Source: Monocercomonoides exilis PA203 (lineage: Eukaryota > Protista > Preaxostyla). Taken from it: a stretch of DNA of 64,000 nt. This document shows positions 5,201-56,700 of the stretch, one piece after another (within the stretch, counting starts at the first letter, position 1; each line of letters starts with the position of its first letter). The DNA lies in NCBI GenBank assembly GCA_001643675.2, contig LSRY02000005.1:806001-870000 (forward strand), read 5' to 3'. A model generated the notes under the pieces. It worked only from the letters and a program-made list of their open reading frames with translations. It ran no database searches and was not told the origin of the DNA. A program made the translations under genes and the position numbers.

Positions 5201-8200
5201 CGCTCTTCAATGATAGGCGCTGGTGGAGGAGTAGAAAGGAACAAGGCAGATGAAACATCAATTGGAAGAGAGGAATTGTTCAGAGAAGCAGAGTGAACGG
5301 CAGAATGTGCACGTGAGCGTTCTGTGGTGAGAGTGGAAGCTGAGACAGATGAAGTAGACCGAGAAGTTATTAGCGATGTGGAAGAGCTTGATGAAGAAGC
5401 AATCATTGACGGAGTCGAACAATCAGGCGAGTCGAATGAATTTGTTTGCGCATTCCACTTTTGAGAGGCATCTTTTTGAGGCGAAGAAAACGATTCTGGA
5501 AATCCATTGGCAGCTTTCTGCTTTTCATTTATCTGCGTTGTTGCATCACCGAGTACAGAAGGCTGCGAAATAGGAAGCAAGTTCTGAGAACAGGAAGAGC
5601 CGCAAACAATGCAAGAAGGAAGAATAGATGATGATCGTGGAGGAGCTTCAAAAGACTTGCGGTAAATTTGAGATTGTAATGTTCCTTCCAAATTCGAATG
5701 CTCAGATGATTCTTTGCTGAAAATGAGATTGCTCCAGTTGATGAATCTTCGATAGCAAGAAGGACAGATTGTTAGGCTGATTGAATCAAAACCAGTGTTG
5801 TAATTAACATTTTGTTGAGATGTTGTTTTTGATTGGCTGTCATCACATTGACAGAAATATGCATTGTTGATTGAGTTTGAAGATGGCTCATACAAAGTTG
5901 GTGAAGAGATTAGAGACTGAGAGCGTTTGTGACTCATTGAACGTTGTGGAGATGGGAATATTGATGAAATCGGTTGCACCGCTGGTTCTTTAAGTTTCTC
6001 TGTATTTTTGGATAGCGAGTTAAATGAAAGAAAAGATGGACGCATAAGCAAAGGTGATTGGTCTGTTTGAATCGGTCTATGGCAGCTTGAGCACAGAGAA
6101 AGCAAAAATGAGGGAGGTATCATCGGCGCGGCAGCCACAGAAGAATCGTCTGATGAGCATCCAGCTGATGATTGGCCAGACAGCAAAGAAGAGTTCAGAG
6201 AACTGGAAAGAGTGCTTGTTGAAAGATGACGAATGGCAGAGCCAGCAGATTTGGTTCCTGTTTGCAGCGTCTCGATGCTCCGCAAGGATGTCGAAGGGGA
6301 TGCGGTTGCTGATTTACCAGCAGTTGTATTTGAAGAAAGAGGTGCTGTTTGAAGCTGGTTTGATGTTGATTGATTTGCCCCTGCCATAAAACGAGCGAAG
6401 TCTGTGCTGCCCAACGGAGAGAAATGTGGTCTCATCGCCAGCATCTGCTGAGTAAGCGGCTGTGCACCTTTCTTTGCATTCTGAACTTCAATTGACAGAT
6501 TCTTCTTGCTTTTCGAAGGCAAACACTCTGAACTAGATGGAGATGGACTGCTTTGAGGAGTGGAAGCATTTGTAGCAATGTGAGGGATAACAGGAAGCGG
6601 AGGATGATACTTTAGTGTGGCAAGAATAGCAATGGGCATGTTGTTGAACAGCTCCAAAAAGCGTGCATAGAGCGGATGCTTCAGCCGATATTCGTATCGG
6701 CCAAACTGGTTGACGATTCTTGTGCCAGGCGGCATTTCACAGGGAAACTTCTCAAACAGCTCCTCGTTGAATCCCCAGTCAAACGAGCGATAAGACTCGT
6801 GGTTCCCTCTCATCATGAATATGCGGTCAGGCAATGCAAGATGGTATAACAGCAGCAGCAAAATAACTTCGAGTGAGTTCTTTCCTCTGTCCACGTAGTC
6901 TCCCAGAAACACCACTTTCGACCGAGAGTGTGGTGCAGTGATGACTCGATCCACTATTTCGAGGGCAGAGCGGAGAGAGTTCAGAGAACCGTGAATATCA
7001 CCCACCACAAGAAGGCCATGCATGTTGTTCTCTTCGTCGTTCACTCCTTTGTCTGGGGCGTCTTCGCAGATTGAATCGATCCGATTCGACATTCTGTTCA
7101 GCAGCACTTGTTTTGTTGCGCTGAGTGGAGGAATTGTTTTGTTGTTTGGGTTCTTCTCAGAAGGAAGACGCTGATCTGTTTTGCTGTCTCTTGGTATCTC
7201 AATTGGCTGCTCGTCATTGTTTGTACTATCTTCAGTATTCAGCTGTTCTGCAGAAACATAACTGATTGCCTTTCCCTTTCGATAGCCAGGCCCATAGTGG
7301 ACTTCTATCTTCTTTAGCATTGATGAACCAGGCTTTGTGTAATGTGTTTGTGCAAGTGTCAAAATTGAGTCAACCATTTCAGCTGAAAAGTGGAGCGACA
7401 GCTGGCCAGTGGCTGGGAAGTACCTCGAATAGATCATTCTTCTGACCTGCTCCACAAACAGCAGCGAAATCCCGTCTTCGGTTGTGGGGAACTGCAGCTG
7501 CGGTGGCGGAAACGGCTCGCGCAGAGGAAGCATCTTTGAAGGTGTTCTGTGCCAGCCGAAGCGGAAGACAGCCTGACGTGGGTCAAACATGGTGGATGGA
7601 TGAAGAGAGCGAAGGGATGTTGGTGTGGAACAGCGGAACAGACTGCGTGAAATACGCTTCATCCGTCGAGAGGGCTCAAACAAGACGATTTTGGTGTTTG
7701 TGGAGGACGTGGAGGAAGAAGGAGATGAGGAGGAGGATGAGACTTTTGCTGGTGGCTGAGCTGGAGGAGTGAACGAAGAGATTTGATTGTGTGTTGATGG
7801 AAGAATCGAAGCCGAAGGCAAAGAAGGAGCAAAAGCAGGAGTCGATGTAACAGAAGTAGATGTACCAGAAGTTAATTGTGAAGGACCTGCTCCATTTGCA
7901 TGAGTAGGAGAACGAGAAAGGAGCGAACCAGAAATTTGGAGCTGTCTGAAAGAACTTGGAAGATTTGAAAGTGTGCACATCTTTCTGAGTGCTGGAACTT
8001 CCATAAATTTGTCTGAATGCTCACCATTTTGTGCCTTGCTGTTTGCGAGCACCTCAAACTCATCCAATTCGTTCATCCTCTGTTTCTTTGCTCGGATTCG
8101 TCTGCTGCGTTCCTTCCTCCTTTCCTTCAGCTTTTCATCTGCCAATCTTCCCAAACGCTTCTTCATCCGCTCTGTCAAAAGAGGTGTCCAAAGTGTTATC

Positions 8201-11200
8201 TCGTTTCCGTTCAGATCAATTTTTGTTCCAATCTGTTTGGAGTCTTCTTTTGGTTGTTCCGAAAGAGGCTCAGGAACATCTTGTGTGAAATCCTGGCTCA
8301 ACCTCGAGCGCTTTCTAGCTTTGCGCTCCTTTTTCGCTTTCTCTTTCAGTTCGGCTGCTCTTTTTTCTGAGGCAGAGGTGACAGGATCATACGGTGGTGC
8401 TGGTATTTCCCCGACGTCTCTCATTCTTCCTGTTTGAATGTCCTTTTGTGTTGGTTGAGAACACACAGGGAAATAGCGATGATGCAGCGGATGGTACACC
8501 ACCTGGAAAGTGAGTCTCCACGACTCAAAGATACCGACTATACCGCACAGGTGATTGCAGGGCACAAGAGGCGCATGGGAGTGGAGATATGGCTTGAATG
8601 AACGAGGTGGAAGAAATGATTCTTCAGGCGTGATTGGATCTTGCTCGGGAGCTGTGCTGGTGGAGAGGCGATGATGTGTGATGATCTGCTCCTCTGTAAA
8701 TGAAGCGGATGTGGAAGCATATTGTGCTATTGATTTTTCATAAAGCGATGGAGATGAAAAAGATGAGTGAATTTTTTGAGATTTTTCTTGATAGTTTTGA
8801 ATATCATTGCTTGATTGGTAATAGTGCGAAGGCGTTTGATTTTGAAAGTTATTCAGTTTTTGTGTTGGCTGTAACAAAGAGAAATGAGGTAGAAGAGAAG
8901 GATTTGGGAACAAAGATGATGGATGTTGTGTTTGAATGCGTTTCTGAGAGGAAATAGTAACACATGGAACGCTTTCACTCTGCTCAGAAGCCTCAACTCC
9001 GTTTTCATCCATATCACTGGAATCTGCCCTCTGAACTGTTTGTGTATTCTCTGCTTGATCAAAAGACGTATGTGATGCAAGCGAAGAAGCCCTTTGGAGC
9101 TGCACTTTGCGTGCTTCCCGCTCTTCGATGATCAAACAGACTGCTCTTTTCAGCTGCGACGCAAACTCAAGAGACCCAAAATCATCCCAGTAATCCTCAA
9201 ACTTCTCAATCGCCAGAAACTTTCTGTTTTGCTCGTGCTGACGAAACAGCCTTTTCGCTTTTCGCGAATATTTGAATTTCTTTTTGTGATCTTTCTGAGG
9301 TTGTGCTTTTGTCTTTGAACTTGTCTTAAGCCCAGCATCTTGCGATACCTCATTATTGGTGTTAATTTTCATATTGTTTGCATTGTTTTTCCTTTCGTTC
9401 TTTCTCCTCTTTGCTGCATCTATTCCATAAGTCCACTCAACATCCTCTTCGTCGAAAAGCCTATTGCACCATTCGCCTTCGCTCTCCTCTTCTTCCTCAA
9501 ACTGTGTGTACCATCGATCTTCCGGTGCTAATTTATTCGGCTGTACTCTTTCTGGTCGCAATGAAATGTTTCCTGCTCTTTCTTTGATTGTAAATGTTTT
9601 TTCTTTTGTTTTATTTGATGATTTGCGTTTTGTTGCAGATTTGCTACAAGAGTGTGAAGAATCAGATTCAGAACTTGTATTTTTCGAGTTCATGCAGTTT
9701 TCATTGATAATCTCTTCTTCACTTTCAGACAAGACTATATCTTCTGACCCCCCTTCTCCAATCCCATCTTCTGAAAGTGATGAAGAAGACAGCTCGTCAA
9801 TGAAGAATCCTGTTCTGCTGAGCTGTCTGGATGCCAGCTCCCAAACATACTCAGCTGCGTCTTCTTCTCTCAGGAAGTCGTCTTCAGCTGGCTGGTTCTC
9901 ATCCCATTCAGAAACCCTGCGACGTCTGTGACAGCAGCGGTGAGTGTGTTTGAGGTGTTTGCTGTGGTGATGGAGGCATCTGTGCTTCGGATCAACTGAG
10001 CTTGGCTTGGCAAAACGGTCGAAGGAAGGGCTTTGGTTGAATGAAAGATGGTGTTGATGATACGATTGAGTTTCGTGGAGCTGGCGGTCAGAAATCAGAT
10101 GAGGCGAAAGAGAAGGATGTGGAGATTGTCTGACAAGTGAGTGGTCGTCAGGCTGATGTTGTGTATGATGGTGGATCAGACTGTACGACCGACTTTGCTG
10201 TGAATGAATGAGCTGAGGTGACAGAAACTCTGTGTTCGGCTTGCTTGTCTGTCTATCATCCAAGCCTTGTCCACTCATTGTTGAATGTGAAGTTGCTGTG
10301 TTGCTCTGAGAAGGATCCAGCGGAGGCGGCAGCTCAATTGTATTGTCTTCTCTTTCCTTCGCCTTTGACTCTTCTTCTGCAATGTAAATAGCCTGTGGAG
10401 CAGAGGCTGTGAGTTTACTGAGACTAAACGAAGAATCATCAGCTGTGGCAAAGAGAGAAGATTGTGGTGAAATGTGTGTTTTCTGCTGCAGTTGCTGTTG
10501 CTGCTGAGAAAGAATGGGAGAAGTGAAAATCGAAGGGACTTGCTGGTGTGGCAGGTTGTTGTTCAGAGAAGTGGTATCAGTCATTAGCAGCTTCTGCTTC
10601 GAGTCTAATGAAGCAGAATTTGAGAACTGTCGTATGACAGGCGGAGGTGAAGGCGTTGCAGACGAAGATGGAACAGAAGAGCAAAGAGATGGGGAAGAAA
10701 GAAGAGGCGTGGCAGTGGTGAACATCATGTTGTCTGAATGCGCCAATGGTTCAGTCTGTGAACGATGCTCGTCAGACGATGAAGGAGAAGAGATTTGCAA
10801 ACTCTGCAATTCTGGAGACAGATTGATAGCTGAGCGATCGAGAGAGGCTGATGCACTGCTTTGCATTCGCTCAGCGCTATTTGAATGGTTAGCCCCTCTG
10901 CTGCGGCTTGAGAACACCTCATCGTCCACTCCTGAGTCCTCTGTCCCTGTTTCACTGCGGTTGCCGTGTCTTCCATTGTTTCTGTGTGAATTGTGCTCGT
11001 TTCTGTTGCCTGTTTCGCAGCTGAATGAGTCAAATGCATCGGTTGTGCTGCTTTCGGAATCAATAAAAGGCAGTTCGTCTTCGATTCGGCGTGAGAAAAC
11101 AGAACAGTTGAGCGAAAGATGGGAGAATGCGCGTGAATCGTATGAATTGGGTTGCATGTGCTCTTCAACTGAATGAATGGAATGTGGATGGAGATGGCAA

Positions 11201-37018: not shown

Positions 37019-40000
37019 ATGCTGTTTAAAGTTTCAACTGCCTTTATGAGGAAACATTCAGTCAGTTCTCCTTTTTCAGGTCTTACTGGATTGACAATTC
37101 AAAGAACAAATCCTTCGTCTTTAAGAATGCAGCAAAATGTGCTATCTCCAAGTCCGTTGCGAAAAGGCTCAATTTCAATTCAAAGGAAAGGGACACCACC
37201 TCCGCAAATAAAACATTCTCCTCTTGTTTCTTCGCACAAACGTCGAAACTCGGCTGATGGTGATGCTCCTTTGACCAAGGCTAATACTGTAAATTACGAG
37301 TTTGTTTGGAATTATGGCGCTTGTAGCTTTGTATCATTAGTTGGTTCGTTTAATTGTTGGTCTGAAAAGATTGATTTTTCTCCTCGGCCTTCTCCTTTGG
37401 ATCAGCTTGGGCCTTCTCAGGATGATATCACTAATGGGCAAATATCGCCTGAGATCTTAGCAAAAATAAAAAAAGAGCAAGAAAAATATCATGGAAAAGT
37501 TAAACATTGGACCAAACAGTGGAATGTTGTTGTATCTCTTCCTGTTGGACAGCATTTTTACAAGTTTATCGTTGATGGACAATGGAGGTACGATCCACAA
37601 GTTACATGCGGAACAGATTCGAATGGAAATATGGTTAATGTGCTTGTGCTAGAACATTCTGACATTGCTTTTGACGAAAATTCCTCATCAAATGTGATTA
37701 ATCCTCTTACGAGCATTTCTGAAACAACATCTCAGCCACACCAGCTATCGATTATTCCTCCAGTTCCCATGACGTCTTCATGGTTGCAGCAGACTTCGCC
37801 CCAACATTTATCTCCTTCTGATGCATCCTCGTCTCTTCATCCTTCTTCACTGGCACAGCCGTCAACATCACCTGCATCATCATCATTGTCATCAGCATCA
37901 TCAGCATCATCAACACGCTCTCCCCGCTCCACTTTTCTTTTTGCCCAAACAGACAAGAAATCCCCCGTCCTGTCGCCTTCCGACTGGCAAAGCTACACCC
38001 AGCTGCAGATGGACTCCGAGTTCTACCCGCTTTCAGCCAGCACGACGCCTTCTGACGGGAATGCCTGTCCAGACGCCTCAGCAGCTGGTTCCTCAGCCTC
38101 GCGCACACCTTCAATAAGCCGGTCGCACACACCCCAGAGCTCTTCTCTAAGCCCGTTTGCGTCGTCCACCCCGCCTCTCTGCTCGCCTTCCTCGCAGACA
38201 CAAATCAACCCTGTGCATTCACAGCAGCAACTCTCCTCGCTATCATCTGCCCCGAAACCTCCTCCACCTCAGCCGTCTGCGTCGTATCTCAACCTTTCCT
38301 CCCCTTTCAATCTGGTCAAAGCCAACACCATCACCACCACTGCCTCGTCTGCAGCTCTGTCTTCCCGTTCCTTCCACTCGCCTTCCAACTCCATTCACGC
38401 GTCTCCCCTCAGCCTGTCCCCCAAAATCGAGTCTGGCAGACACGGAATGTACGCCAAAATCGGCCCAGCCTCCTCACGCGGTGCTTCCCCAGGGCCTCTT
38501 TCGCCGTCCCCATCCACATCGCCTTCTCTGACCCCTTCAGCCATTCCGTCGCCGACGTCTTTCCATTCCTCCTCTTCTCGCTCGACTCCTTCACCGTTTG
38601 CTCCGGTTCCGCCGGCTTCCTCGTCAGAGGCTGTTTCCTCTGTGCAGTTCCAACAAGGGAGCAGAAAGATAGAAGCCAGTTCAAATGCGAAGAAGAGCAA
38701 AGAAAAGAACGATGCCAAAAACGAAAGTGCAAAGAAAGAGGAGAGAAACAAAGCAGACAACAACAACAACAGCAGCAGCAGCCAACAACCACACGGACAC
38801 TCAAAAAGGACAGCATATCCAGTCATTGGCTATAAATCATCCTCAGGTGGCGATGAAGAAGGATTTGGATCCCATTCAAATGCGTTTAGTGGGGTGACGA
38901 CAGAGGACACGCAGTGGAGAGGGAGGTATGAGCAGCACAAGAAGGAGAGGGCAGCGGCTGGGCTGGAAGAGTCAGAGTCAGATGCGTCGCTGGATATCGA
39001 CAACGAAGTGAAGGAGAGCGAGATGAAGTACGGGGACGTGATCTTCGATGCGTTTGAGGACGACAACAAGCAGATGATGGGAAGAGGAAGTGAGCTAGGC
39101 ACAGGAAAGGAAGCAGAGAGGGAGAAGATGAAGGAGCTGTTAGCACAGAACCCGCTGTTGCGGTGGTCGCATGTGCTGCCTCCGCCCACGATCTTCAAGA
39201 AGACGAAGAAGCAGGCAGCGCCGTTTCCTGGTGTGCTGGGGACGAAAGTGATGAATATCCAGAGGCAGCGAGGGTGGGAGCCAGATCTGATGCCGAAGAT
39301 GGAGAATATCATTGTGAATCACTTGTGGGCAGCGGAGCAGCGGACAGTGAGGAAGATCAAGTATTTGGAGGTGATGAGGGAGTTGAGGCAGATGAAGGCG
39401 AAGGAGAGAGGGAAGGAGAAGGAGAAAGAGAAAGAGAAAGAGAAGAGTGAAAAGAAACAGAGGGAGAAAGCGATTGGGAATGAGCTGAGGCAAAAAGAAG
39501 AAGGATCAGAAAAGAAAGAGGGAAAAGAGGGAAAAGAGAAAAAAGGGAAGAAGGACAAGTCGAAACAAGGTGGAAAAGAGAAGAAGAAGGACAAGAAAAA
39601 CAAGAAGGAGGAAGGAAAGAATGCTGAGGTGGAAGGGGAAGCAGAAGCAGAAGGAGAAGAAGACAATGCAAACGATGCAGAGAACATTAACCAAGAGCTT
39701 AATAATTCCAAACAAGATCATCGTTTGCCTTCATACTTTGCAGAAATAACAGAAATGTCTGAGAAAAAAAGGAGAAATTCACTTATGTATCCGCTTCCCT
39801 TCCCTTCTCTCTCACCTTCTCCTTCTCCTTCTCCATCGCCCAGCTTCTTCTTCGACATTGAAACCCCTCCTTGTGCCTCACCCCCTCTTTCTCCTATTCT
39901 TTCTGCTTTTCCTTCTCAGTCTCCATCTCCATCTCCATCTCCATCTCCTTCTCCTTCTCTTTCCTTTTTCATTTCTCCCTCTGTTACTCCTTCTCCTTCT

Positions 40001-40762
40001 CCTTCTCCTTCTCCCTCTCATTCTCCTTCTCCTTCCTCCTCCTCTTCTTCCTCTTCTTATTCTTCTCCTATTTCCAGTGCCTCTCTTTCTCCTTCTCCTT
40101 CTCCTTCTGTCTCGCCACACCCTTCCTTCTCCACTTCATTCTTCTCAACATCCACATCTCAGCCACAATCAACCACTTCTGCTTCTTTGGTTCCGTTTGC
40201 ATCATCATCATCATCATCTTCCTCTTCCTCTTCCTCTTCTTCCTCTTCTTCACCATTTCCTTCTTCTTCTGTAAATGACAAGTCCACTTCACAACAACCA
40301 TACACCCAACCACCAAACAGTTCTTCCTCATCTCAAAATGCCCCTCCCTCACAAGACTTGTATGTGTCTCTGTCACCTTATCTCTCTCACATGCACCATT
40401 CTCCACCTCAGCCACTTCAACAGCCTCATCATTCATCATCATCATCTTCTTCTTCTTCTCCTTCTTCCTCTCCCTCTCCTTCTTCTTCTTTTCCTTCTTC
40501 TTCTTCTTCTTCTTCTTCTTCCTCTTCTCCTTCTGCCCTCAATTCTTCATTCACCCCAGCTGATCCATTCATTTTAGAGGCAATGGCTCGTCTGAACAGA
40601 AGCACAGACACAAAAGAAGACAGCTCAGCGCCTTTTCCTGCCTCATCCAACAAAGTCTTCTCAATTGATACAAATCCTGTTTCCAATGGCAATTCATCTG
40701 CTTCTGCTTTGTCTTCTGATTCATTGAATTCATCATTATCATCGTCTTCTTCTTCTTCTTCT

Positions 40763-40793
<31 letters not shown>

Positions 40794-41623
40794 TTTCCTT
40801 TTCTTCTGACACTTCTGCCCCCACAACATCCGAAGCCTCGCTCTTCAAAGCACTTCCGATGGAGGCTCAGCATCCAGCCACATCAGCCGAATCTTCACTG
40901 AAGCAATGCCAAAGCAACATGAATGGAGGAAACCAAGCAGCTGGACTTTCTGTCTTCACTTGTGATGAGCCAATGAAAACAGAAGAGAAATTCTCGTTTG
41001 AAATCCCCGCAGCTTCACAGCCTTCGCTCTCGACGTCGTTTTTCGATCCTGTGCCTGATCCAGCGAAAAGGAATGAAGCAGAAGAGGAAAAGAAAGAGAG
41101 GAAAGAGAACAAAGAAAAGAAAGAAGGGAAAGAAGACAAAGAAAACAAAGAGAACAAGTCCAAAAAGGGCAACAAAGAGAGCAGCATAAAAGATTTCCTC
41201 AAAGACGAGCACTCCAACTTGGCAAAGGCGTATCGCTGTGGAATCGACCCAGCCACTCTGAAGATCAGCCCTCTCATCAAAGTGCTGTTGGACTATCCGA
41301 AAGCTGACCAGAAGCCGGCTGTGATATTCAGCATGGTGCACAACTACAACTCGAAGATGACAACTGTGATGCTCTACATGCCAGCCCCTGCAGCTGTTTC
41401 TGAGGCGAATGCGAACACTTTCCTGTCTGGGCAGATCGTGAAGCACATGATGAAGAGGAAGGCAAAGTACTACAACATTAGAGTGGGCAATGTGCACACA
41501 CTGAAGCTTGCACCGGATGAAGGAGCGGAGCTGATGATTTTGAGGGAGAACGAAGAGAAAGACGGAGAGATGAGGCTGATGGGACTGACAGGGCAGACAG
41601 GGAATACAGAACCAATGGAGTAG
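37019..41623 (+). CDS. AMPK/SNF1 beta subunit-like protein, greatly expanded (1534 aa)
   Basis: CBM48 glycogen-binding motifs (FVWNYG..VSLVGSFNCW; LPVGQHFYKFIVDGQWRYDP..TDSNGNMVN). The ASC domain is in two pieces: PFPGVLGTKVMN...EPDLMPKMENIIVNHLW and VIFSMVHNYNSKMTTVMLYMP. Confidence 0.88.
39800..40810 (+). repeat. Coding (TCTCCT)n/(TCT)n microsatellite arrays encoding Ser-Pro and poly-Ser tracts
   Basis: Directly visible within the AMPK-beta ORF. Confidence 0.9.
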
Positions 41624-43006: not shown

Positions 43007-44131
43007 TTACTCAGTTCTTGCCCTTTTTTCATGAAACTGTATTCTTTGCTCAAAATCATCATCGTAATCGTCTTCATCGTCATCATCAAGCGAGCCTCTC
43101 GAGGTGTTATACGCAGAACTTCTTGATGAATTGCTTGGAGCATATGAGCTTAGTCGCTTTTGAGGCAATTTATCGTGAGATGGCTGTGTAACTGGATTTG
43201 AATGTGGTTGCGCTGAACTGTGCTCTTCCTTGTCATCTTCTTCATCTTTTCCAGAAATCCTTTCTTCAACTTGCTTCAAGCCTCGTTCAATTCGCTTTTT
43301 CTTTTCTTCTTCCCGCTCTCTTTCAGCTTTCTTTTCAGCGTCTAAATCTACTTTTTCCTTTTCTTCCAATTCATCTTTGTCAATTTCGCCTTTATCTACA
43401 CTCTCTTCAGTCAAAAACACATAATCACGAGTACTATGCCCAAATTTCACAACATCCTTTTCTTTAATTTCATAATATTGATACGGCTCCAATTTTTCAT
43501 CGTTGAGAAATGTTCCATTTGTGCTCCTAAGATCCATAATAAAAGGACTAATTGTTTAAAATGTGATTTATTTCACAATAAATCTTTAATTTTTGTACAA
43601 ACCGAACGACAGTTTTCATTGTTCCATCTTTTTGCGCAAGAGATAATTTTCTGAAATAAAGAACAGCATGCTGAGAAGATGTCGAGGGATGCAAAATGGG
43701 AATATCCGCAATCTAAGCAATGGGATTAGAAAGTGAAATTACAATTCAATTTGTCATCTTAAATCAAACTCTTTTATCTCTTCCAAATAAGAATCCAGTA
43801 CGAGTATGAATTGGTATTGGATCTTTAAAAAAAATACTTTTCAAAATTTTAGTAAAAAAGAAATGAAACCTTCAACTAAATCATCATCTTTAAAACAATA
43901 AATTCTCCATCTCAACTTTGGAATATGAGCATCTGGGGGTTCGTCCCATTTCAAATAGATTCCTTTGTAGTAACAGCCTTCAGCAGCCAATGCGCCGCTC
44001 TAAAATAAAGAATTCAATACATAAATATTTTCAATCTTTACAAATGCGAAATATGAAAATACAAGGCAAACTTGTTTATAATTTGGTTCTTCTTTCTTGG
44101 TACTTGCATTTGTTTTCCCTAATTCAGACAT
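43007..44131 (-). CDS. SNIP1: FHA-domain protein SNIP1/Pml1 (RES complex), five exons
   Basis: The spliced product has EPNY..SGALAAE, LKWDEPPDA..PKLRWRIYCFK, FLFGRDKRIADIPILHPSTSSQHAVL and PFIMDLRSTNGTFLN..YYEIKEKDVVKFGHSTRDYV, matching the SNIP1 pattern. Confidence 0.9.
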
Positions 44132-46262: not shown

Positions 46263-46802
46263 TTAACTTGAAGTTTGTTGCCTCAATTCAACAAGTTGTT
46301 TTTGTAATTCATCTGCTTTCTTTTCTGCTGCCTCATGAAGCTTTTCAACTCGTTCTCTATAAGTGTTTCATTTTGATTAGAATATAATCAAATTGCAAAA
46401 ATCAAAATGATCTAACAAATACAAACAATTCTTCTTTCAAATGATGTTCATGCTGAGCAAGAATGTGAATAGTTTCCTCTTTGCTTTGGGGAAACATAAC
46501 AGTTCCCACTTGCTTGTAAATTTCATCAGTATCTTTCGCTAATTCAAGCTCCTAACAGTAAAGAACGAACAAGCATTAAAATTTTTATTTCATAGACTGC
46601 TTTATGCAAACTTTACGTGTCATTTCATGCTCTGTTTGTTGTGCAAGAAGCTTTTGCCTTGAAGATGCCAAATCGGTCAGTTCTATAAAAAAAGTTTGAA
46701 GATCAATTTGAAGACATCAACCATACCCTTTTGAGAGCTTCTTATTTCCGCAAGCAATTTATCGAGTTTCTCTTGAACTTCTGGAGCGAGCTGTGCCGAC
46801 AT
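46263..46802 (-). CDS. PFDN6: Prefoldin beta-type subunit, most like subunit 6; four exons, absent from the ORF track
   Basis: Spliced: MSAQLAPEVQEKLDKLLAEIRSSQKELTDLASSRQKLLAQQTEHEMTRKELELAKDTDEIYKQVGTVMFPQSKEE...LVELRQQTSS*. Coiled coil, beta-hairpin, coiled coil, with the RQKL.AQ..E...EL and YK.VG.V signatures. Confidence 0.85.
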
Positions 46803-46872
46803 TTTTCTTCTCTTTTTCTTTAAGTTCCTTACTTATGGTAATGGCCCATATTACAACTGACAGGATCCCCAA
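46803..46872. promoter_or_regulatory. Putative 70-bp bidirectional promoter between PFDN6 and the NAT10-like gene
   Basis: Only 70 bp separate two divergent ATGs. Contains GTAAT-GGCCCAT-ATTAC. Function is inferred from geometry only. Confidence 0.5.
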
Positions 46873-49800
46873 ATGGTAAAACGCAATTATTTGGGTTCCC
46901 TATTTAAAAAAGCATACAAACACCAAAATAAAACTATCATTGGATTATATGGAAGCGAAAATCTGAACAAAATAGTCTGAATACTTTTTTCTTTTAAAAT
47001 TTGAAGAAATTTATGAATTTTTCTTTTATGCTTTTTATTATGATTTAAACTATTATCAATTTCATAATCGTCACAAAACAAAATGTTTTTCTGACATGAA
47101 TTTGTGCAAATTATATAATTTTAGTGCTTGGCAACTGCAAAGTTATTGAAAAAAGCTGATATTCAATGTTCTGTGTTATCTCTTGCTCACAATAATTCAA
47201 CGTTTGTTCAATGTTCCTAATTTAAATGCACTCATATTTTTTACAGAGAAAGTGCTCTTTCAGATGATGTACTGCGCAATGTTAATGGATATCGCTTCAT
47301 AGAGATTTATTCATCTGTTCCTTATCCATGTGGTGATCCACCATTTTCAATTTGCATTGTCGAGGTATTAATTTCATTTTGTTAACGCATTGCAATTATT
47401 TTCACTTTTTAAAAATAGGATTTTTTATCAACATCCTTTGATGTTATTTCTAATACTTTCCTTGCATTAAATCCATTTTCAATAATACTCATCGATCTTT
47501 CTGCAGCCTTTCCAATTTCCTTGAAGGATGCGGTTTGTTAATTCATAAATTGATGATTTAAAGATATGACCACTTTCTTTCTTTTTTTCCCCCCGAAAAG
47601 GGATCGTTAATTCCTGATGAATTTCTTTCTCCATCTCGAAAGAGAGTTCTTTCCATTCTGTTCTCTTCACCATTTTCGCTTTGTCTATCTAAACGAGAAT
47701 ATTTACGTCAAGCATCATCTCTTTGCACGCAATCTTTTCTTCTCAATTCTTCTCAGTCAGAAGCTGAAACGAAAAAATCTTCAACACTTTCACTTTCTTT
47801 CGCATCATCATCGTTACCAAATCCATCTGCAGCATCTCATGCAGCTCTCACTTCAATTTCGCAACTTCTGTCAACTGTGGCAGATATTCCAATCATTTCA
47901 CCTCTTTTTTCTGATCTTTGCTCCCACCATATCTTCTCTTCCACTTATTCTTCTGGCACATCAACTGATAATTCGGAAACCACTTCTGATCCGATCCCAT
48001 ACTCCACTCCAGAATCTATTCTCGAGCAAGCAAATGCATTTCTCGTGGTTGCAAATGCATTGTCCGCACATGTGTCGTCTTTTGGCTCGCTTACCACTTC
48101 ATCTTCACTAATTAATGACTTAACACAGTTGAACAACTTAGGTTCTTTGTCGTCGCTTCAGCTGGTTGGAAATAGTTTTGTCTTAGCTGCACCCACAACA
48201 GCGTCGCTATCTTCGGCTGCTGTGTGCGGTTACTCGATTGCTGTGGCTGTGGCTGTTGGCCTCCCGTCGATCTCACTTGTGGCGATGGAAGGAGCAACGA
48301 GAGAGGAAAAGGAAGTTGTTACAGCAATTAAAGCAGGAAGATCAGTGAAAAACATAAAAAAGAGAGAAAAAGAAGGAGATGAAATGTCAAGTCAAACGAA
48401 GATGACTGACAGCGCTGATAGTATTTTGGAGAGCACATCCAGTCTGACAGAAACAGAGACCATTTGGATGTCGTGTCTGCGTGCCTTTGATTTGCTGGGA
48501 TATAAAGAAGGAAAAGACTACACGATCGTTGCACACGAAGACAGCTCAGAAGCAGCAAAAAGAAAGAAAAAGAAAGTTGGATCTACACAAAAGGAAGGTC
48601 AAATAGAGAATACCAGACAATCTGTCAGTCGGCCAACAATTGTTCGAATAGACTTCTACAAAACACACAAGCAGACAATCCAGTTTCTGCTTCCAACTGA
48701 GCTTCACTTGGCTTCTCTCTCTGACTTCACTGTCTGCGTGTCACCTCATCTTTTCCCCTTCTTCCTCTCTTCCTCTCCTCTTTCGTCTGTCTCTGCCACT
48801 TCATCCTCCTCCTTTTCTCAGCAGTCTTCCATCATCCAAAAGCATCTTGCCTCGCTTCCTTTCTCTCTCTCCACCATTTCAGTTGGAGGGCCAGACGGGC
48901 TTCCAGACGACGAATGGATCAACGAAACGTTCTCTGGCGCTTCTACGGGCACTTCATCTTTTGCTTCGTCTGTCGTGCCATCAGAAAGATCTCGTCAGTC
49001 TTCCTCGGCAAAATCACTCATTCTGCAGCATCCGCCACGGATGCCTGTGTCTGACCCGCTTCTCCATCTGCTCGAGAGGGCTTTCTTCTTCTCATACTCT
49101 CCACTTGCTTCTTCGCCTTCCGAAGATAATACATCACTCGCCCGTGCTCCATCAACCAGTCTGGGTGTGTGCAGTGTTTGCCCTCCTCCTGCTTTGTGTG
49201 TGCTGCATCTTGTGAATGCATCTGCACTTTTATCACTTCAGAATGCATCGCCAAGCGCTATTCTCAAACTTTTTGCAGACAAAAAAAAGAAGGCCGAAGA
49301 AGATGGTGAAAGAAGTGATGACAGTGAGGAAGAAGAAGAAGATGGTGATGAAGACAGCGATTCAATGAATGGGGATGACGAGCATAATTTCGAAGATATG
49401 GATGTTGATTATGAAGGCATTTCACAGAAGAACTCAAAGAAATTTGGTGCGCTGAAATCAGAAAAAAGCAACAAAGCTAAAGGCAAGCGACAATCACAGG
49501 CTAATTTGCAGAAAAGCGGTGAAATTTCCAGAGAACAGGAGGAAGAAGAGCTTCTGATGAAAGTGCTGCATTTGCTTCGGGTGTCTCGTTTGACTCCGAC
49601 TTCGGCAGAGGAAACACGATGCATCATTGACGAAGGACAGCAAAGAGAAGAGAATGAAAATGGAGATGCAGGAAAGAAAAATCAAGAAAAGAAGGAAAAC
49701 GCAAAGGAAGAAAAAGGGAAGAAAAAGCGAAAAAGCAAAAGCGGATCAATTTCTGTGCAGGAAACAGAAGAGAAAACAACAAACAAAGAATCTGGCCCAA

Positions 49801-51757
49801 GTGAACATCAGCTTAACCTCATTTTTGCGCTTGTTGGAGAAGGAAAACAAAAGAATACAAAGCCGAAAGAACAGAAATCAAATCCATTGGAAGTTGGGCT
49901 TGGAGAAGAAGATGGAGAAGAAGTCATCAAGAGCGAAATAATGTGTGTGTTGCGAGTTGTGATAGAGTGGCCTGCCAAGCCGTCTTCAACCTCGCAGCTA
50001 TCATCATTTTCATCATCGCTTCCAACGCTATCTCAAGAGCTGTCGGTGAATCTGTTTGAGCCTTCGCTTTCTGAATGTGTTGTGGCGAAGATAGATTCCG
50101 TGGCGACTCATCCTCTTGTGACTGGAATTGGATACGGCACAGAAGCAGTTAAGCAGCTGAAGCTGTGGCTGCAGGGAAAACTGTGGCTGTCTAACCCAAA
50201 TCCATCATCATCGCCATCTTCCTCGACAAATTCGTTTGAAGAAGGAATCCCTGAATCGTTTAAACTGGACAATTTACCGTTTCTGACTCCTCTTCAGGAT
50301 GTCTTCCCGCCTTCTGTTGATGTTCTTCTTGCGAAATTGCCATTCGGAAATCATGTCTTGGCAGAGCGAGTGAAAAGAAATTCACTTCCTGGAGAATCAT
50401 CTCATGCTGAATCAGGTTAGAAAATCGGAGTTTTTATCCAAAAAATTGTTGCTTTAATTTTTATTTCTTATTTTATTTTTTTGTTTTTTTTGACAAATTG
50501 AAATATTCATTATTCACAGGTCTTTACGTGGAACGATACTTGTCCTGTGGAATTGACATAAATCGGGTTGTGCCGTTTCTGCAGAGGTGTGGAATGCGTG
50601 CTGTTCTGCTGACTCAGTCACTCCCACTCAACTTGCAGCACTCAATGAATGACAAGCAACAGAATTCAGTTGATGTGGACATAAGCCCAGAGAGCTTGTT
50701 TTTTGAAAATGATGATGAGCCAAAGAAAAGTAAGAAAGGGAAAAAGAGAACAGGATTGAAGAATGAAACAAATGAGGATAAAACGAAGCTGAGTAATCAG
50801 TGGGAGCTTTGGATGATGTGTGATGTTCGAGTTGAAAAAGAAAATAAAGAAGAAGAAGAAGAAGAAGATGGAGAAGAAGGGGATCTTCATTTGAATAGTA
50901 CTGAGGAGTTAAATGAAAAAGATGAAGCCGACGATGAAGATGATGACGAACTGATTATTAAGCCAATTGGAAAACAATCAGCAGAATTTTTGTCATCAAC
51001 AAAAATCTCTTCAACTGAAGCCAAATCAAAAGCAAACCGCAAATCCGAGGAAATGATTCCTGCAAAAGGATGGCTCAGACGTAGTAATGATCGCTTTAAG
51101 TACCGTCTTCTTTCTCTGTTGTCGTTCAGCCGTGTTCCTCTCTCCTCCACTGTTGCACTTGATTTGCTGGACCCAACTGCTAACCGCTTCCGCGGCCTTC
51201 CATTTTCAGCTTCAGCACCACTTGTGAGCCCAACCTCCCTTTCAATTGGCAGCAACTACTCAGCTTTTGTAAAACATTTACTGCATAGTCAAATGAAAGA
51301 ATATAATAAAACAGAATCACAGAAAAAGGATGAAAGGGCAGAAACGGACGAATGGGGCGAGCCTGAAGATGAACAATCTTTAAAATTTGATTCAATTCCT
51401 GAAGAAAAATCGATCAATCTTTCAGCCTCTTCCCACTTCACTCCGTACGATATGCAGAGGCTGTTTCGCTTTTCTCGCGGAAACTTATCGATTTCGTTTG
51501 TTTTGGATTTGCTCCCTGCAGTGGGGATACAGATGGTGTCTGGAGCTGCCAGGTGTCCGCTCACTCGCACAGAAGCAGCCGTCCTTGTTGGAGTGTGCCT
51601 GCAAAGGCTTTCCGAAGAGCAAATTTCGGCACTCACAGGCCTTCAGATAAGCCAGATTACAAGCAAGCTGAAGGCAGCAGCTGGAAGAGTTTGGGAGTGC
51701 GCTGAAAGAGAAAAAGTTGAAGAAGAAGAAAAAAGGCTGAAATCTGTAACAAAATAA
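46873..51757 (+). CDS. NAT10: Highly divergent NAT10/Kre33 (RNA cytidine acetyltransferase) homolog, six exons, catalytic motifs degenerate
   Basis: Collinear NAT10-like blocks: SICIVEDF, AFDLLGYKEGKDYTIV, IVRIDFYKTHKQTIQFLLP, CPPPALCVLHLVN, VATHP..TGIGYG, FKYRLLSLLSF, FTPYDMQRL and AAVLVGVCLQRLS. Four 5' introns and one at ~50416-50519 give a continuous frame. Confidence 0.88.
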
Positions 51758-52243
51758 AGATTAATCTTGAAGTTCTTCAGTAGTCAGAAGTGTACAGCAT
51801 TATTTATTTTGAACACTTATTTAATATTTCTCCATTTTTTTTACATAAATAATTTTCAATTTATTTTAAAATTACAAAAATTTTGATTAAAGAATATTTA
51901 TCTATAAAAAAAAATATTTTTCAAGAAAATGATAAATAATTTTCATATTAATGCAAATGGACTGATATTTTATAACATTTTTTTTTGAAAATAACCCACA
52001 GAACCATCACTAATTAAAAAGCAAACTGGTAAAATGTGACTTTTTCGCTCGAACCATTGTAGTTCAAACAGACTTTTCTTCCAGAAAAATATATTATTCA
52101 AATAGATTTTTTTAGTCGACACAATTTTGAACATATCAGTTTGTTTTGAAAATATATTTATAAATATAGGAGAGATATTCTTTCACTTTTTTCTATTTTT
52201 CAATTTGAGTTTTCCTCTTTTTCTCACTATTTCCACAACAACG

Positions 52244-52307
<64 letters not shown>
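52244..52307. repeat. Poly(A) homopolymer (~64 nt)
   Basis: Directly visible. It coincides with the end of the receptor 3'-flank duplication. Confidence 0.95.
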
Positions 52308-53730: not shown

Positions 53731-56700
53731 TCATATTTTGAAGCTCGCATCCTGTCTTTGCTCCTCGTCTTTCATTTTCGAGGAAACATCATCTGCAAGT
53801 GAAATGAGTTCGCTTCCATCTTCTGCTGAACCATGCCCATCATTCTCGCTTGAGCTTTCCTCAATCCTGATTGCATCAGTCATCGTGATCGTCGTAGCAC
53901 CTGCTGGAAACTTCTCGAAAAACTCACGTTTCAGATGAGCCAGCATTGGTCTGCTTTCTTCGTCATTCAGCATGCATTTCTTCACAATCTCCTTCAAAGA
54001 ACTTCCTGTGATAACACTCATATCTGGTCTTTCTCCATTCACAATCTTCTGCCCTGCCACCTCTGCTGGATACTCCCCAAACGGGATCTGCAGTGTCAAG
54101 CATTCCCACAGCATCATCCCAATCGAGAATGACACCGATTCCTTTGTTGCACCCATCTTCTTGTTCATCAGCAGCTCGGGTGCTTTCCACCTCAGACACT
54201 CTTTTTTGAAGCTATCCTCATCCTCAAATGCCGATGAGGGAAGTGAATCATCATCATCAGTTGCAGATGTCGCAACTGTTGATGAAGAGATGGATGAGGA
54301 ATCTAAGTCATCGGATGAAAGGAAGTCAGAGTGCATCACAATGCAGATCACCATATGCTCAGAGAAGAGAACAATGTGAGGACTCAGATTGGAAAGTGAA
54401 GAAAGAGGATTTTCCATCTCATCAAAGGAGTGGAGGGCGAGATTAGTCACCCAGAACAGGATCTGAGCAGCTGTTTGCTCCCTCTCCTGAAGAGTGCCAA
54501 TCGCCATCTCCTTCGTCTTGTTCCTCCCATGAAGCAGCATGAACAGTGAATCCCTCAGATCCACAATCAGCTTTTCATGAGGCGATGAACAGGCCATTGC
54601 ATCCACCAGATTCGACATCGACGAGGTGGTTGGACAGAAACTCTCTGGTCGGATAAAAGTTGAATCTGAATTAGTTGAACATGTCGAAGATATTGATGGA
54701 GATGGTGTTCTCTTTCTTGTCTCTTCATCATCTTCTTCTTTCTCATCAACCTTTTCCAATGCCCAATCAGGAATTTTGTCTGAGTCTCTGCCCAATATGT
54801 ATTCAGTTGATCCACTTTCACTCAGCAAATGCTCTGATGACTCAGAGTGTCCCAAGCTTTTCTCATACACCCTCTTCTTTATCCTCTCATCGTTCTTTTT
54901 CTCTGCCTCCTTCTCTGCTCTCCTCCACTGCTCTTCAGGTGACATCTCCATCGTCACAATCTCAATCAGCTTCGGATCCTTCTTCACTGTATCTTTCACA
55001 ATTTTCTCCAATTCATCTGATCGTTCCTTTGCTTTCTTCCATCTGATAATGAATATTATGGATACAATTTTTAGCACTTCGACAACCACTATGCAAACAA
55101 TCAAGATCCATGAGATTTTTCCTTCTTTACCGCTTTCAACAATTTTTTCATTATCTTTTGGTTCAAGCTCACTACTGTTCTTCAGAATGAATGACTGTGT
55201 TGATGAAAAAGATTCTGTATTTCCGAACAGAATACACACATTCACCTCCGCATTTGCATCTGCTGTTCTCACAATCGCAGATTCAACTGCCACATTGACT
55301 TCCTCTTCGCTCACAAAGCCCGAGTCAAGTATTTCATGAGTCTCGACTTGCTCAACATCTCCAATGGAGGAAGTCACACGAAAAGAAAGATTGCATGGCA
55401 GAAGAAGTGCTCCTCTGAACACAATGCTCAAAAGCTCTTCGTTCTGTTCTGGTGTGGCAGATCGAAGAATTGGGATAAACAGTGGTGATGCTCGCTTCTC
55501 AACGATCCCCTTCAAGATGCATCCATCATTCAAGATCCACAATGACGAATTATCCTTCACTCCATCTCCTCCCTACAGACTCACAATATTCAGCTGAGCA
55601 GAATCAGAGCACATTATGTTTCTTCTAGCTGATAGAAAGCCTCGAATTGTCAAGCTATTGAATTCAAAGAAGCCTGAGTCTATCTTCACCTCTCCTCCCT
55701 TCACCGACAGCCCACCCAATGATGAGTTTGAAACTGACACATCTTTCATGCTCGCAACGCTCTCTTCAACATCCACAACAGAGCCATTCCATCTGCATAT
55801 TTCATCTCTCTCAAATCCCTCTTTTTCTTTCATTTGTTCATTTTCCTCAAGAGCACCCACAAACATGCATGAGTCCAAGCTCAAGCTCGTGCACTTGCAA
55901 AAAGAGGCTTCAATCCCCCGAGTGCATCTTGACTCACATTCTGCAAACGAACAGTTTTGTAACACAATCTTCCCTTCTCCATCTTCACATTCCACTCCGC
56001 ACGCTCCTTCACTTGTTCTGCTAATGTTGCTGAACTTCGATAACATCATATCCATTCTTTTCTCATCACCTCTCAGCTGCTTCCTTCCCTTCTCATCTCG
56101 TAACATTCCATTATTCTCATTTCCACCTTCTCTCAACATGTTGACAGCAGGCCCATTCTCAATCCTCACATTCACCACATCAAGTTCCTTCACATTCATC
56201 TCTCCATTCCTCAAGAAAAACAACCCATTCCTGCTCTCACCTTTCTTCACCACAACTTCTGATAGCTTCATCTCACACTCAACACATTCAACAAGCGAAA
56301 CACACTCAAACTGTGAAACAATTAATCCAGTTATTGCGACTGATGATCTTTCTCCATGTATCAGCCTTGGCATTCTGCACACATTGCATCCTTCTGCTGG
56401 CTTCACCCAACATTCACTCATTGAAAGTGTTCCCTCCTCCACACCAAATATCTGCTCGTGTTCTGTTGGAAAGACTTCTGGAATCTCAAAGTTGATTCTC
56501 TCCACACTCACATTCCCCTTGCACTCCACAACACAATCCTTCTCTTTCCTCTCCAATCTGCTCATTCCAACTGTTGCCCTGCTTCCCTTTGCCAGCAGTG
56601 TGAGATTCTCCAGCTTGATCTCTGTTTCCACTTCACTTGCTTCATCCACCACAACTCGCGTTCCATACTCGTGCACAATGTGTGTCAGCCCATATCCCAG

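Follow-up and report, generated by a model that had tools for sequence, protein, structure and literature searches.

The RNA cytidine acetyltransferase NAT10 (Kre33 in yeast, TmcA in bacteria) is normally encoded by a single, highly conserved gene and is described as the only enzyme of its kind in eukaryotes. Its essential role in yeast is structural and not catalytic: yeast tolerates a catalytically dead Kre33, but not the deletion of Kre33. Inactive paralogous subunits are known from other RNA-modifying enzymes, where METTL14 is paired with METTL3, Trm6 with Trm61, and ADAT3/Tad3 with ADAT2. The gene described here lies in a stretch of 64,000 nucleotides (contig C47:806001-870000, referred to below as the window) of the genome of the oxymonad Monocercomonoides exilis, which comprises 82.3 Mb in 101 contigs. 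It occupies positions 46873-51757 of the plus strand of the window and encodes a NAT10-like protein from which the catalytic and nucleotide-binding motifs of the family have disappeared. The gene product is probably a pseudoenzyme, a non-catalytic RNA-binding or scaffolding NAT10-like subunit that is kept next to a canonical NAT10.

The known structure of NAT10 provides the frame for this comparison. NAT10 forms a head-to-head, tail-to-tail dimer. The RNA-binding tails, with about 1000 square angstroms, do most to hold the two subunits together, and each of them lies at the active site of the partner subunit, where it acts in trans (PMC13433802). In the enzyme from Chaetomium thermophilum (CtNAT10), the P-loop is formed by residues G288-S292; K291, S292 and E390 hold ADP-Mg, with E390 chelating the Mg ion (PMC13433802). 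The His-Tyr pair H548/Y549, of which the His corresponds to yeast H545, is essential for activity, and either of the substitutions H548Q and Y549F leaves the protein inactive with no loss of stability (PMC13433802). The contacts to coenzyme A (CoA) that are used below were also taken from CtNAT10 (PMC13433802). An H545A yeast strain was used in the same work (PMC13433802), consistent with the viability of yeast that carries a catalytically dead Kre33.

The M. exilis gene has six exons, and the homologue searches covered single exons or the public protein model (P0001), leaving the 34 residues of exon 1 outside every search. In phmmer comparisons with the solved structures, the protein is collinear with the human, yeast and Chaetomium NAT10/Kre33 chains in five segments. 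A custom profile, built from 26 canonical NAT10s, gives ordered matches in the helicase (28.9 bits), GNAT (24.9 bits) and tail (44.2 bits) regions, with a whole-protein E of 1.2e-27; its matches in the exon 5 part lie at positions 314-382, 497-530 and 568-667. Of the Pfam families, tRNA_bind_2 passes its cut-off of 27 with 39.8 to 52.1 bits (52 on the isolated tail piece) and GNAT_acetyltr_2, at 19.5 to 23.3 bits, stays below its cut-off of 24.6; Pfam gives no NAT10 match on the isolated N-terminal and helicase pieces. The helicase half is visible only by the custom profile and in AlphaFold models. Two word-based searches, one with exon 5 and one with the C-terminal 435 residues, matched only the protein itself; low-complexity words filled the candidates, and these blanks are meaningless. 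On the alignment and profile evidence, homology to the NAT10/Kre33/TmcA family is secure.

The order of the parts appears to be the same as in NAT10/Kre33 and bacterial TmcA: an N-terminal domain, a helicase-like domain, a GNAT domain and a helical RNA-binding tail. A first-pass annotation, made from the DNA letters by a model, had claimed that all four regions are retained in this order. The claim stands for the tail by Pfam and for the GNAT and helicase regions by the profile; for the N-terminal domain it comes from alignment only. Unlike NAT10/Kre33, the protein is about 400 residues longer, owing to Ser-rich and Glu/Lys-rich inserts. The parts differ in how well they are preserved. Among the near-invariant columns, defined as those conserved in at least 90% of canonical NAT10s, 11 of 19 are kept in the tail, compared with 38 of 143 in the N-terminal and helicase regions taken together; in the GNAT domain, 8 of 33 remain. 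The tail is 23% identical to that of the canonical M. exilis paralogue (E 7e-8), and the two copies share 36% identity over 39 residues around GNAT motif A. By these counts, the putative RNA-binding tail is the best preserved part of the protein.

The losses concern the residues on which the chemistry of NAT10 depends. Equivalent positions were identified from the phmmer alignments to solved NAT10/Kre33 chains, from the profile and from MAFFT alignments. The segments are the following.

48186..48230, plus strand: relic of Walker A (P-loop); canonical APRGRGKSAALG is replaced by AAPTTASLSSAAVCG, with neither Gly nor Lys
48732..48758, plus strand: relic of Walker B; VIDEAAAIP is replaced by VCVSPHLFP, the Asp-Glu being Val-Ser (phmmer against C. 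thermophilum Kre33, and MAFFT)
48870..48899, plus strand: STISVGGPDG where canonical proteins have STI(N/S)GYEGTGRS; GGPDG is common to the Blattamonas orthologue
49581..49610, plus strand: relic of the catalytic His-Tyr loop; SSHYKNSPND is replaced by VSRLTPTSAE
50085..50159, plus strand: GNAT strand 4-loop-helix 3 (motif A); ARVVRIATHP..QGMGYG is replaced by AKIDSVATHP..TGIGYG (in phmmer against the solved structures, RIA(V/T)HP..GYG is set on SVATHP..GYG)

At the former P-loop, MAFFT sets AAPTTASLSS opposite canonical TAxRGRGKSA, and the aligned P-loop segment itself reads TTASLSS. In a pattern scan of the whole protein, GK[ST], HY and Q/RxxGxG/A are all absent, and the sole hhhDE falls outside the helicase region. 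The His loop was placed between two anchors, CPPPALC...LVNASALL and LIFALVGEG, which are common to the Blattamonas and Streblomastix orthologues; the positional equivalent of the His-Tyr site is SRLT in M. exilis and SRRH in Blattamonas. The MAFFT register of the M. exilis loop, which lies inside an insert, was judged to be misplaced, and neither register yields a His-Tyr. In motif A, the Arg of the RIA motif (yeast R637) is Ser, and the first position of the Q/RxxGxG/A pattern is occupied by Thr and not by Gln or Arg. The GNAT pocket motifs GDLIPW and TGEH are gone. The Lys/Ser of the P-loop, the Asp-Glu of Walker B and the His-Tyr, all present in NAT10/Kre33, are thus lacking from the protein. 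These losses are meaningful because the equivalent CtNAT10 residues hold ADP-Mg or are essential for activity.

The four degenerate motif readings of the first-pass annotation were all recovered at these positions, and their equivalence to the canonical motifs is supported by phmmer, profile and MAFFT alignments. Its broader description, of a full-length NAT10 homologue with the catalytic machinery gone, holds as well: GK[ST], the Walker B Asp-Glu and the His-Tyr are missing, and aligning the catalytic positions, a step that the annotation had suggested, brought to light no intact equivalent of GKS, DEA or the catalytic Arg.

The second NAT10 that the first-pass annotation had proposed to look for exists. 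A six-frame search of the whole M. exilis genome finds a canonical NAT10 on contig C32 (C32:666400-670300), where each of the four Pfam domains of the family scores 58-142 bits and the motifs in the open frames are GRGKSAALG, VIDEAAAIP, SSHYRNSPND and RIATQP..QGMGYG. A weak PF05127 match on contig C14, which was considered as a third copy, is a superfamily 1 (SF1) helicase (AAA_11/AAA_12). M. exilis has exactly two members of the NAT10 family, one canonical and one degenerate. The same annotation had put forward, as the first of two options, that the lineage lost N4-acetylcytidine (ac4C) and kept its sole NAT10 as a pure scaffold. The motif losses themselves would fit such a history, and nothing further was found in its favor; however, the gene on C32 has every motif and another canonical NAT10 is present in Blattamonas, so that the proposal fails at the gene level and is practically untenable. 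With a normal NAT10 present, the NAT10-like gene is therefore less striking than was first proposed.

The degenerate copy is not confined to M. exilis. Among the 33 hits of a full HMMER scan over 1.84 billion representative proteins, three are relatives of the divergent type: BLNAU_8781 from Blattamonas nauphoetae, EZS28_004348 from Streblomastix strix and a Joint Genome Institute (JGI) metagenome fragment (3300042620). The databases label the divergent orthologues as hypothetical proteins. The remaining hits inspected, which are all but a 95-residue fragment (P0034), carry canonical NAT10 motifs. Blattamonas has a canonical NAT10 in addition (P0037). BLNAU_8781 is annotated from an internal Met. 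Its frame extends 280 codons upstream, to 1007 codons (JARBJD010000058.1:6161-7000), and this upstream part encodes degenerate N-terminal and helicase-like parts; the Blattamonas orthologue has SPVLSESLRH for the P-loop and VVLDSD for VIDEAA. The Streblomastix gene model is also truncated: helicase-like exons without the P-loop and the Asp-Glu lie upstream in the same frame, interrupted only by in-frame TAA/TAG, codons that this organism presumably reads as Gln. The Streblomastix orthologue is seemingly split into two annotated genes (SNRW01000617.1:5069-5764 and 7001-8650). At the position of the RIA Arg, M. exilis has Ser and Streblomastix has Lys; Blattamonas has either Arg or His, depending on the placement of a one-residue gap. 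Motifs specific to this group, GGPDG, (N/E)PFS and an RVW near the C-terminus, are kept among the divergent orthologues.

A tree calculated on 216 alignment columns groups the four divergent sequences together with support of 100/99; the stem of this clade has a length of 2.25 substitutions per site, and Streblomastix branches first within it. A second clade (support 97/97) unites the canonical NAT10s of the two oxymonads. When the divergent clade is made to join this second clade, the log-likelihood falls by 0.11 units, with a p of 0.45 in the approximately unbiased (AU) test, and this arrangement is neither rejected nor shown. The terminal branches of the divergent clade are 1.9-3.6 substitutions per site long. 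The divergent copies of M. exilis and Blattamonas are 28-38% identical in four aligned blocks, compared with 50% over 644 residues for the canonical NAT10s of the same two species (34-54% across three aligned stretches). By these distances, the divergent copy evolves much faster than the canonical NAT10. Since the orthologues with the same losses fall in one clade and Blattamonas has a canonical NAT10 as well, the gene was duplicated and one copy inactivated early, before the sampled oxymonad genera separated, and this dead copy has been retained ever since.

The gene itself is intact and expressed. Its exon model combines the joints seen in RNA contigs (four runs from one study) with the public model MONOS_9520 (protein P0001, 1454 amino acids, 100% identical by protein search), and comprises 1487 codons with no internal stop.

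46873..46974, plus strand: exon 1, 34 codons with the start ATG; RNA joint from 46974 to 47125 (GT..AG) in runs X1 and X4
47125..47201, plus strand: exon 2; acceptor from the RNA joint, donor GTTTGT at 47202 from identity to P0001
47247..47364, plus strand: exon 3, first part of the degenerate N-terminal (TmcA_N-like) domain; translation equal to P0001, flanking introns GT..AG
47419..47532, plus strand: exon 4, remainder of the N-terminal domain relic; RNA joint from 47531/2 to 47600/1 in run X1
47601..50415, plus strand: exon 5, 938 codons and 1 nucleotide in a single open frame
50416..50519, plus strand: intron 5, 104 nucleotides, GT..AG, removed in contigs of all four RNA runs
50520..51757, plus strand: exon 6, to the stop codon; end of the GNAT domain, acidic insert and RNA-binding tail (about 51035-51754)

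The conceptual translation of the six exons is identical to P0001 from residue 2 of the latter onward. The public model starts at exon 2, without the RNA-supported exon 1, and thus appears to be truncated at the N-terminus. In the alignments, exon 3 corresponds to the canonical region GMCVLQDFE...GGG (MAFFT), and exon 4 has NPFS where canonical NAT10 has EGGG. A Ser-rich linker, the helicase-like domain and the larger part of the GNAT domain are encoded by exon 5; two long inserts rich in Glu and Lys break up the GNAT domain. Each of the five introns is GT..AG, and three of them (46975-47124, 47533-47600 and 50416-50519) are spliced out in the RNA contigs. The contigs match the locus without mismatches and span exon 5 without differing letters. 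At position 49280, in a Glu/Lys-rich insert, one contig of run X1 has an extra A, and the three other runs agree with the genome; the extra A probably reflects misassembly of this low-complexity stretch.

It might be argued that the gene is a decaying duplicate, either a pseudogene that is still transcribed or a functionless gene that drifts neutrally. Its very high divergence, the long low-complexity inserts and the long terminal branches in the tree are what such a gene would be expected to have. However, 1487 codons without a stop, five intact introns and spliced RNA do not fit with decay, and neither do the open frames of the orthologues in Blattamonas (the 1007-codon frame) and Streblomastix or the conservation of clade-specific motifs, so that a gene without function is very improbable. 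The first-pass annotation had described an intact spliced reading frame and had argued for selection rather than decay, naming lack of expression as something that would speak against it. The six-exon frame and the spliced RNA contigs in four runs, together with open-frame orthologues in three oxymonad genera, bear this out.

By combining these results, a history of the gene can be proposed. An ancestor of the sampled oxymonads would have duplicated NAT10, and one copy, represented by the gene on C32 in M. exilis, would have stayed canonical. The other copy may have lost ATP binding and hydrolysis together with the P-loop and Walker B, and with the His-Tyr pair its capacity for cytidine acetylation, as well as most of the conserved motifs of the GNAT pocket (GDLIPW and TGEH). 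It would have gained long low-complexity inserts and continued to evolve fast. The four-domain fold and the glycine loop for the CoA pyrophosphate would have been kept, and most of all the helical tail that binds RNA. The divergent protein would then most probably act without catalysis in small-subunit ribosome biogenesis or in RNA acetylation, and would dimerise through its tail either with itself or with the active NAT10. The chemistry has been shed, and the tail, which in NAT10 makes up the main interface of the dimer and works in trans, has been kept; the protein is therefore read as a non-catalytic subunit. The results above show the homology, the loss of motifs, expression with splicing, conservation among oxymonads and the presence of a canonical NAT10 beside the dead copy, whereas the lack of activity, the non-catalytic role and the partner are inferred from them.

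Several observations weigh against this interpretation. The N-terminal domain is visible only in a by-eye alignment and in MAFFT, and no statistic supports it separately. Identity among the orthologues is 23-46% in blocks, and synonymous sites are saturated for a ratio of nonsynonymous to synonymous substitution rates (dN/dS); we infer selection on the gene only from open frames in three genera, conserved blocks and expression. The NAT10-like fold of the AlphaFold models is partly circular because the input alignments contain canonical NAT10. Finally, the CoA loop is largely kept, and the protein may bind acetyl-CoA and, with it, perform some altered chemistry.

The models of the two halves, which were calculated from such mixed alignments, have a mean predicted local distance difference test score (pLDDT) of 57-59, a low value that is due to the disordered inserts. 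In the helicase core, with the strand-loop-helix at the former P-loop, the pLDDT is 73-95. The best matches of the first half are NAT10/Kre33 chains (Foldseek E 5.8e-7). The second half also matches NAT10/Kre33 chains best, with a Z of 14.5 and a root-mean-square deviation of 3.1-3.6 over 186-213 residues, compared with a Z of 8-9 for generic GNATs. The models support compatibility with the NAT10 fold and are not an independent proof of it.

The state of the CoA site raises the possibility that the protein is still an enzyme, whose GNAT domain binds acetyl-CoA and acetylates another substrate, protein or RNA, by means of other residues and without ATP. The pyrophosphate loop retains GxGxG, a Thr equivalent to T640 and a Thr in place of S651. 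Strand 4, the loop and helix 3, with the GxGxG, are kept in three genera and are modelled at a pLDDT of 84-93, and Streblomastix has the full RxxGxG. Yet the indispensable His and Tyr are both gone, and even the conservative H548Q and Y549F kill CtNAT10 (PMC13433802). The small number of near-invariant GNAT columns left and the loss of GDLIPW and TGEH also speak against a working pocket, and no conserved replacement acid or base was seen among the orthologues. An enzyme of altered specificity is thus improbable, and the reading as a non-catalytic subunit is preferred.

The partner of this subunit is of particular interest. It is conceivable, although not very likely, that the dead copy forms an obligate asymmetric heterodimer with the active NAT10, through contacts of the tail and the helicase, and supplies it with an RNA-binding tail that acts in trans, in the way that METTL14 serves METTL3 and Trm6 serves Trm61. 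A pairing of an active and an inactive subunit was the other option of the first-pass annotation, and it fits the known dimer: dimerisation of NAT10 is constitutive, and the tail of one subunit works at the active site of the other (PMC13433802). Moreover, no part of the paralogue is better conserved than the tail, and both copies coexist in M. exilis and Blattamonas; the paralogue, however, could equally form homodimers. A complex prediction for the canonical tail and the paralogue tail gave a score of 0.00; it had no controls and the fold of the partner is uncertain, and it is counted neither for nor against binding. If such a heterodimer were found, it would be the first arrangement for RNA acetylation that resembles METTL3-METTL14.

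In a variant of this arrangement, the dead copy might also take the role of the adaptor Tan1/THUMPD1. THUMP domains are usual in eukaryotes, where they occur in Tan1/THUMPD1 and in methyltransferases of the THUMPD2/3 type. A six-frame search of the genome with the Pfam THUMP domain (PF02926) gave no candidate, as would be expected from such a replacement; the blank result is weak, however, because the domain is short and genes are split by introns, which possibly limited the sensitivity, and it cannot carry the absence of Tan1/THUMPD1. A genome search with the Rfam snoU13 model gave nothing over the cut-off (best 16 bits, compared with 46) and is uninformative. The full proposal, that the homodimer of the oxymonad NAT10 became an obligate active/dead heterodimer in which the dead subunit gives the trans-acting tail and perhaps replaces Tan1/THUMPD1 in the selection of substrates, is tentative and on balance unlikely.

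Whichever partner it has, the proposed non-catalytic subunit resembles known dead paralogues. As in the case of METTL14, Trm6 and ADAT3/Tad3, a dimeric enzyme was duplicated, and one copy lost its catalytic residues and kept the fold and the RNA-binding surface. An active paralogue in the same genome and a dead copy conserved across species, which characterize pairs of the METTL14 and Trm6 type, are both found here. Unlike in those systems, for which the heterodimer and the division of labor have been demonstrated, the NAT10 paralogue is known from its sequence and may act alone. The trypanosomatid 'prozymes' are dead paralogues that activate S-adenosylmethionine decarboxylase (AdoMetDC) and deoxyhypusine synthase (PMC5201418, PMC3663545). 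They, too, are lineage-specific, catalytically dead protist paralogues kept beside an active enzyme; they differ from the NAT10 paralogue in that they are metabolic enzymes with a proven allosteric activation.

Searches of the literature yielded no description of such a NAT10/Kre33 paralogue, nor did they show that NAT10 has been mentioned for Monocercomonoides. RNA-modifying enzymes with dead paralogues are already known, and one in the NAT10/TmcA family appears to be new. A dead copy that is kept across oxymonad genera is a natural separation-of-function allele of NAT10, and shows which parts the protein needs when it does not have to catalyse, mainly the tail, the CoA loop and the cores of the domains. 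With it one could also test whether an active/inactive heterodimer is able to sustain RNA acetylation, in the way that such pairs serve several RNA methyltransferases and deaminases. The reach of the finding is limited, as the paralogue is confined to one protist order and its function is deduced from sequence.

Several features of the locus lie outside this argument. In the GAA/GAG-rich insert of the gene, the intervals 49326-49364 and 49890-49920 collect many spurious RNA joints and loose ends, at a depth of 126-196 compared with about 12 elsewhere; this pile-up is cross-mapping of other acidic-repeat transcripts and not splicing. The deepest RNA contigs of the RNA-mapped stretch belong to a neighbor on the minus strand (46611-46822), whose 44-nucleotide intron (46683-46726, CT..AC as read on the plus strand) is spliced in all four runs. 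This neighbor ends about 50 nucleotides upstream of the start codon of the NAT10-like gene, and the two genes are therefore arranged head to head. The loci of the divergent NAT10 in M. exilis and Blattamonas have no neighboring genes in common. Farther upstream in the window, a frame on the plus strand (37019-41623) encodes 1534 amino acids with an AMPK glycogen-binding module (AMPK1_CBM, 62.8 bits), and a frame on the minus strand (43007-43537) is a fragment that ends an FHA domain. Just downstream of the gene, at 52190-52260, lies a long A/T homopolymer-like tract, which encodes a run of Lys on one strand and of Phe on the other, and it is followed by a frame on the minus strand (53731-55560) with a protein kinase domain.

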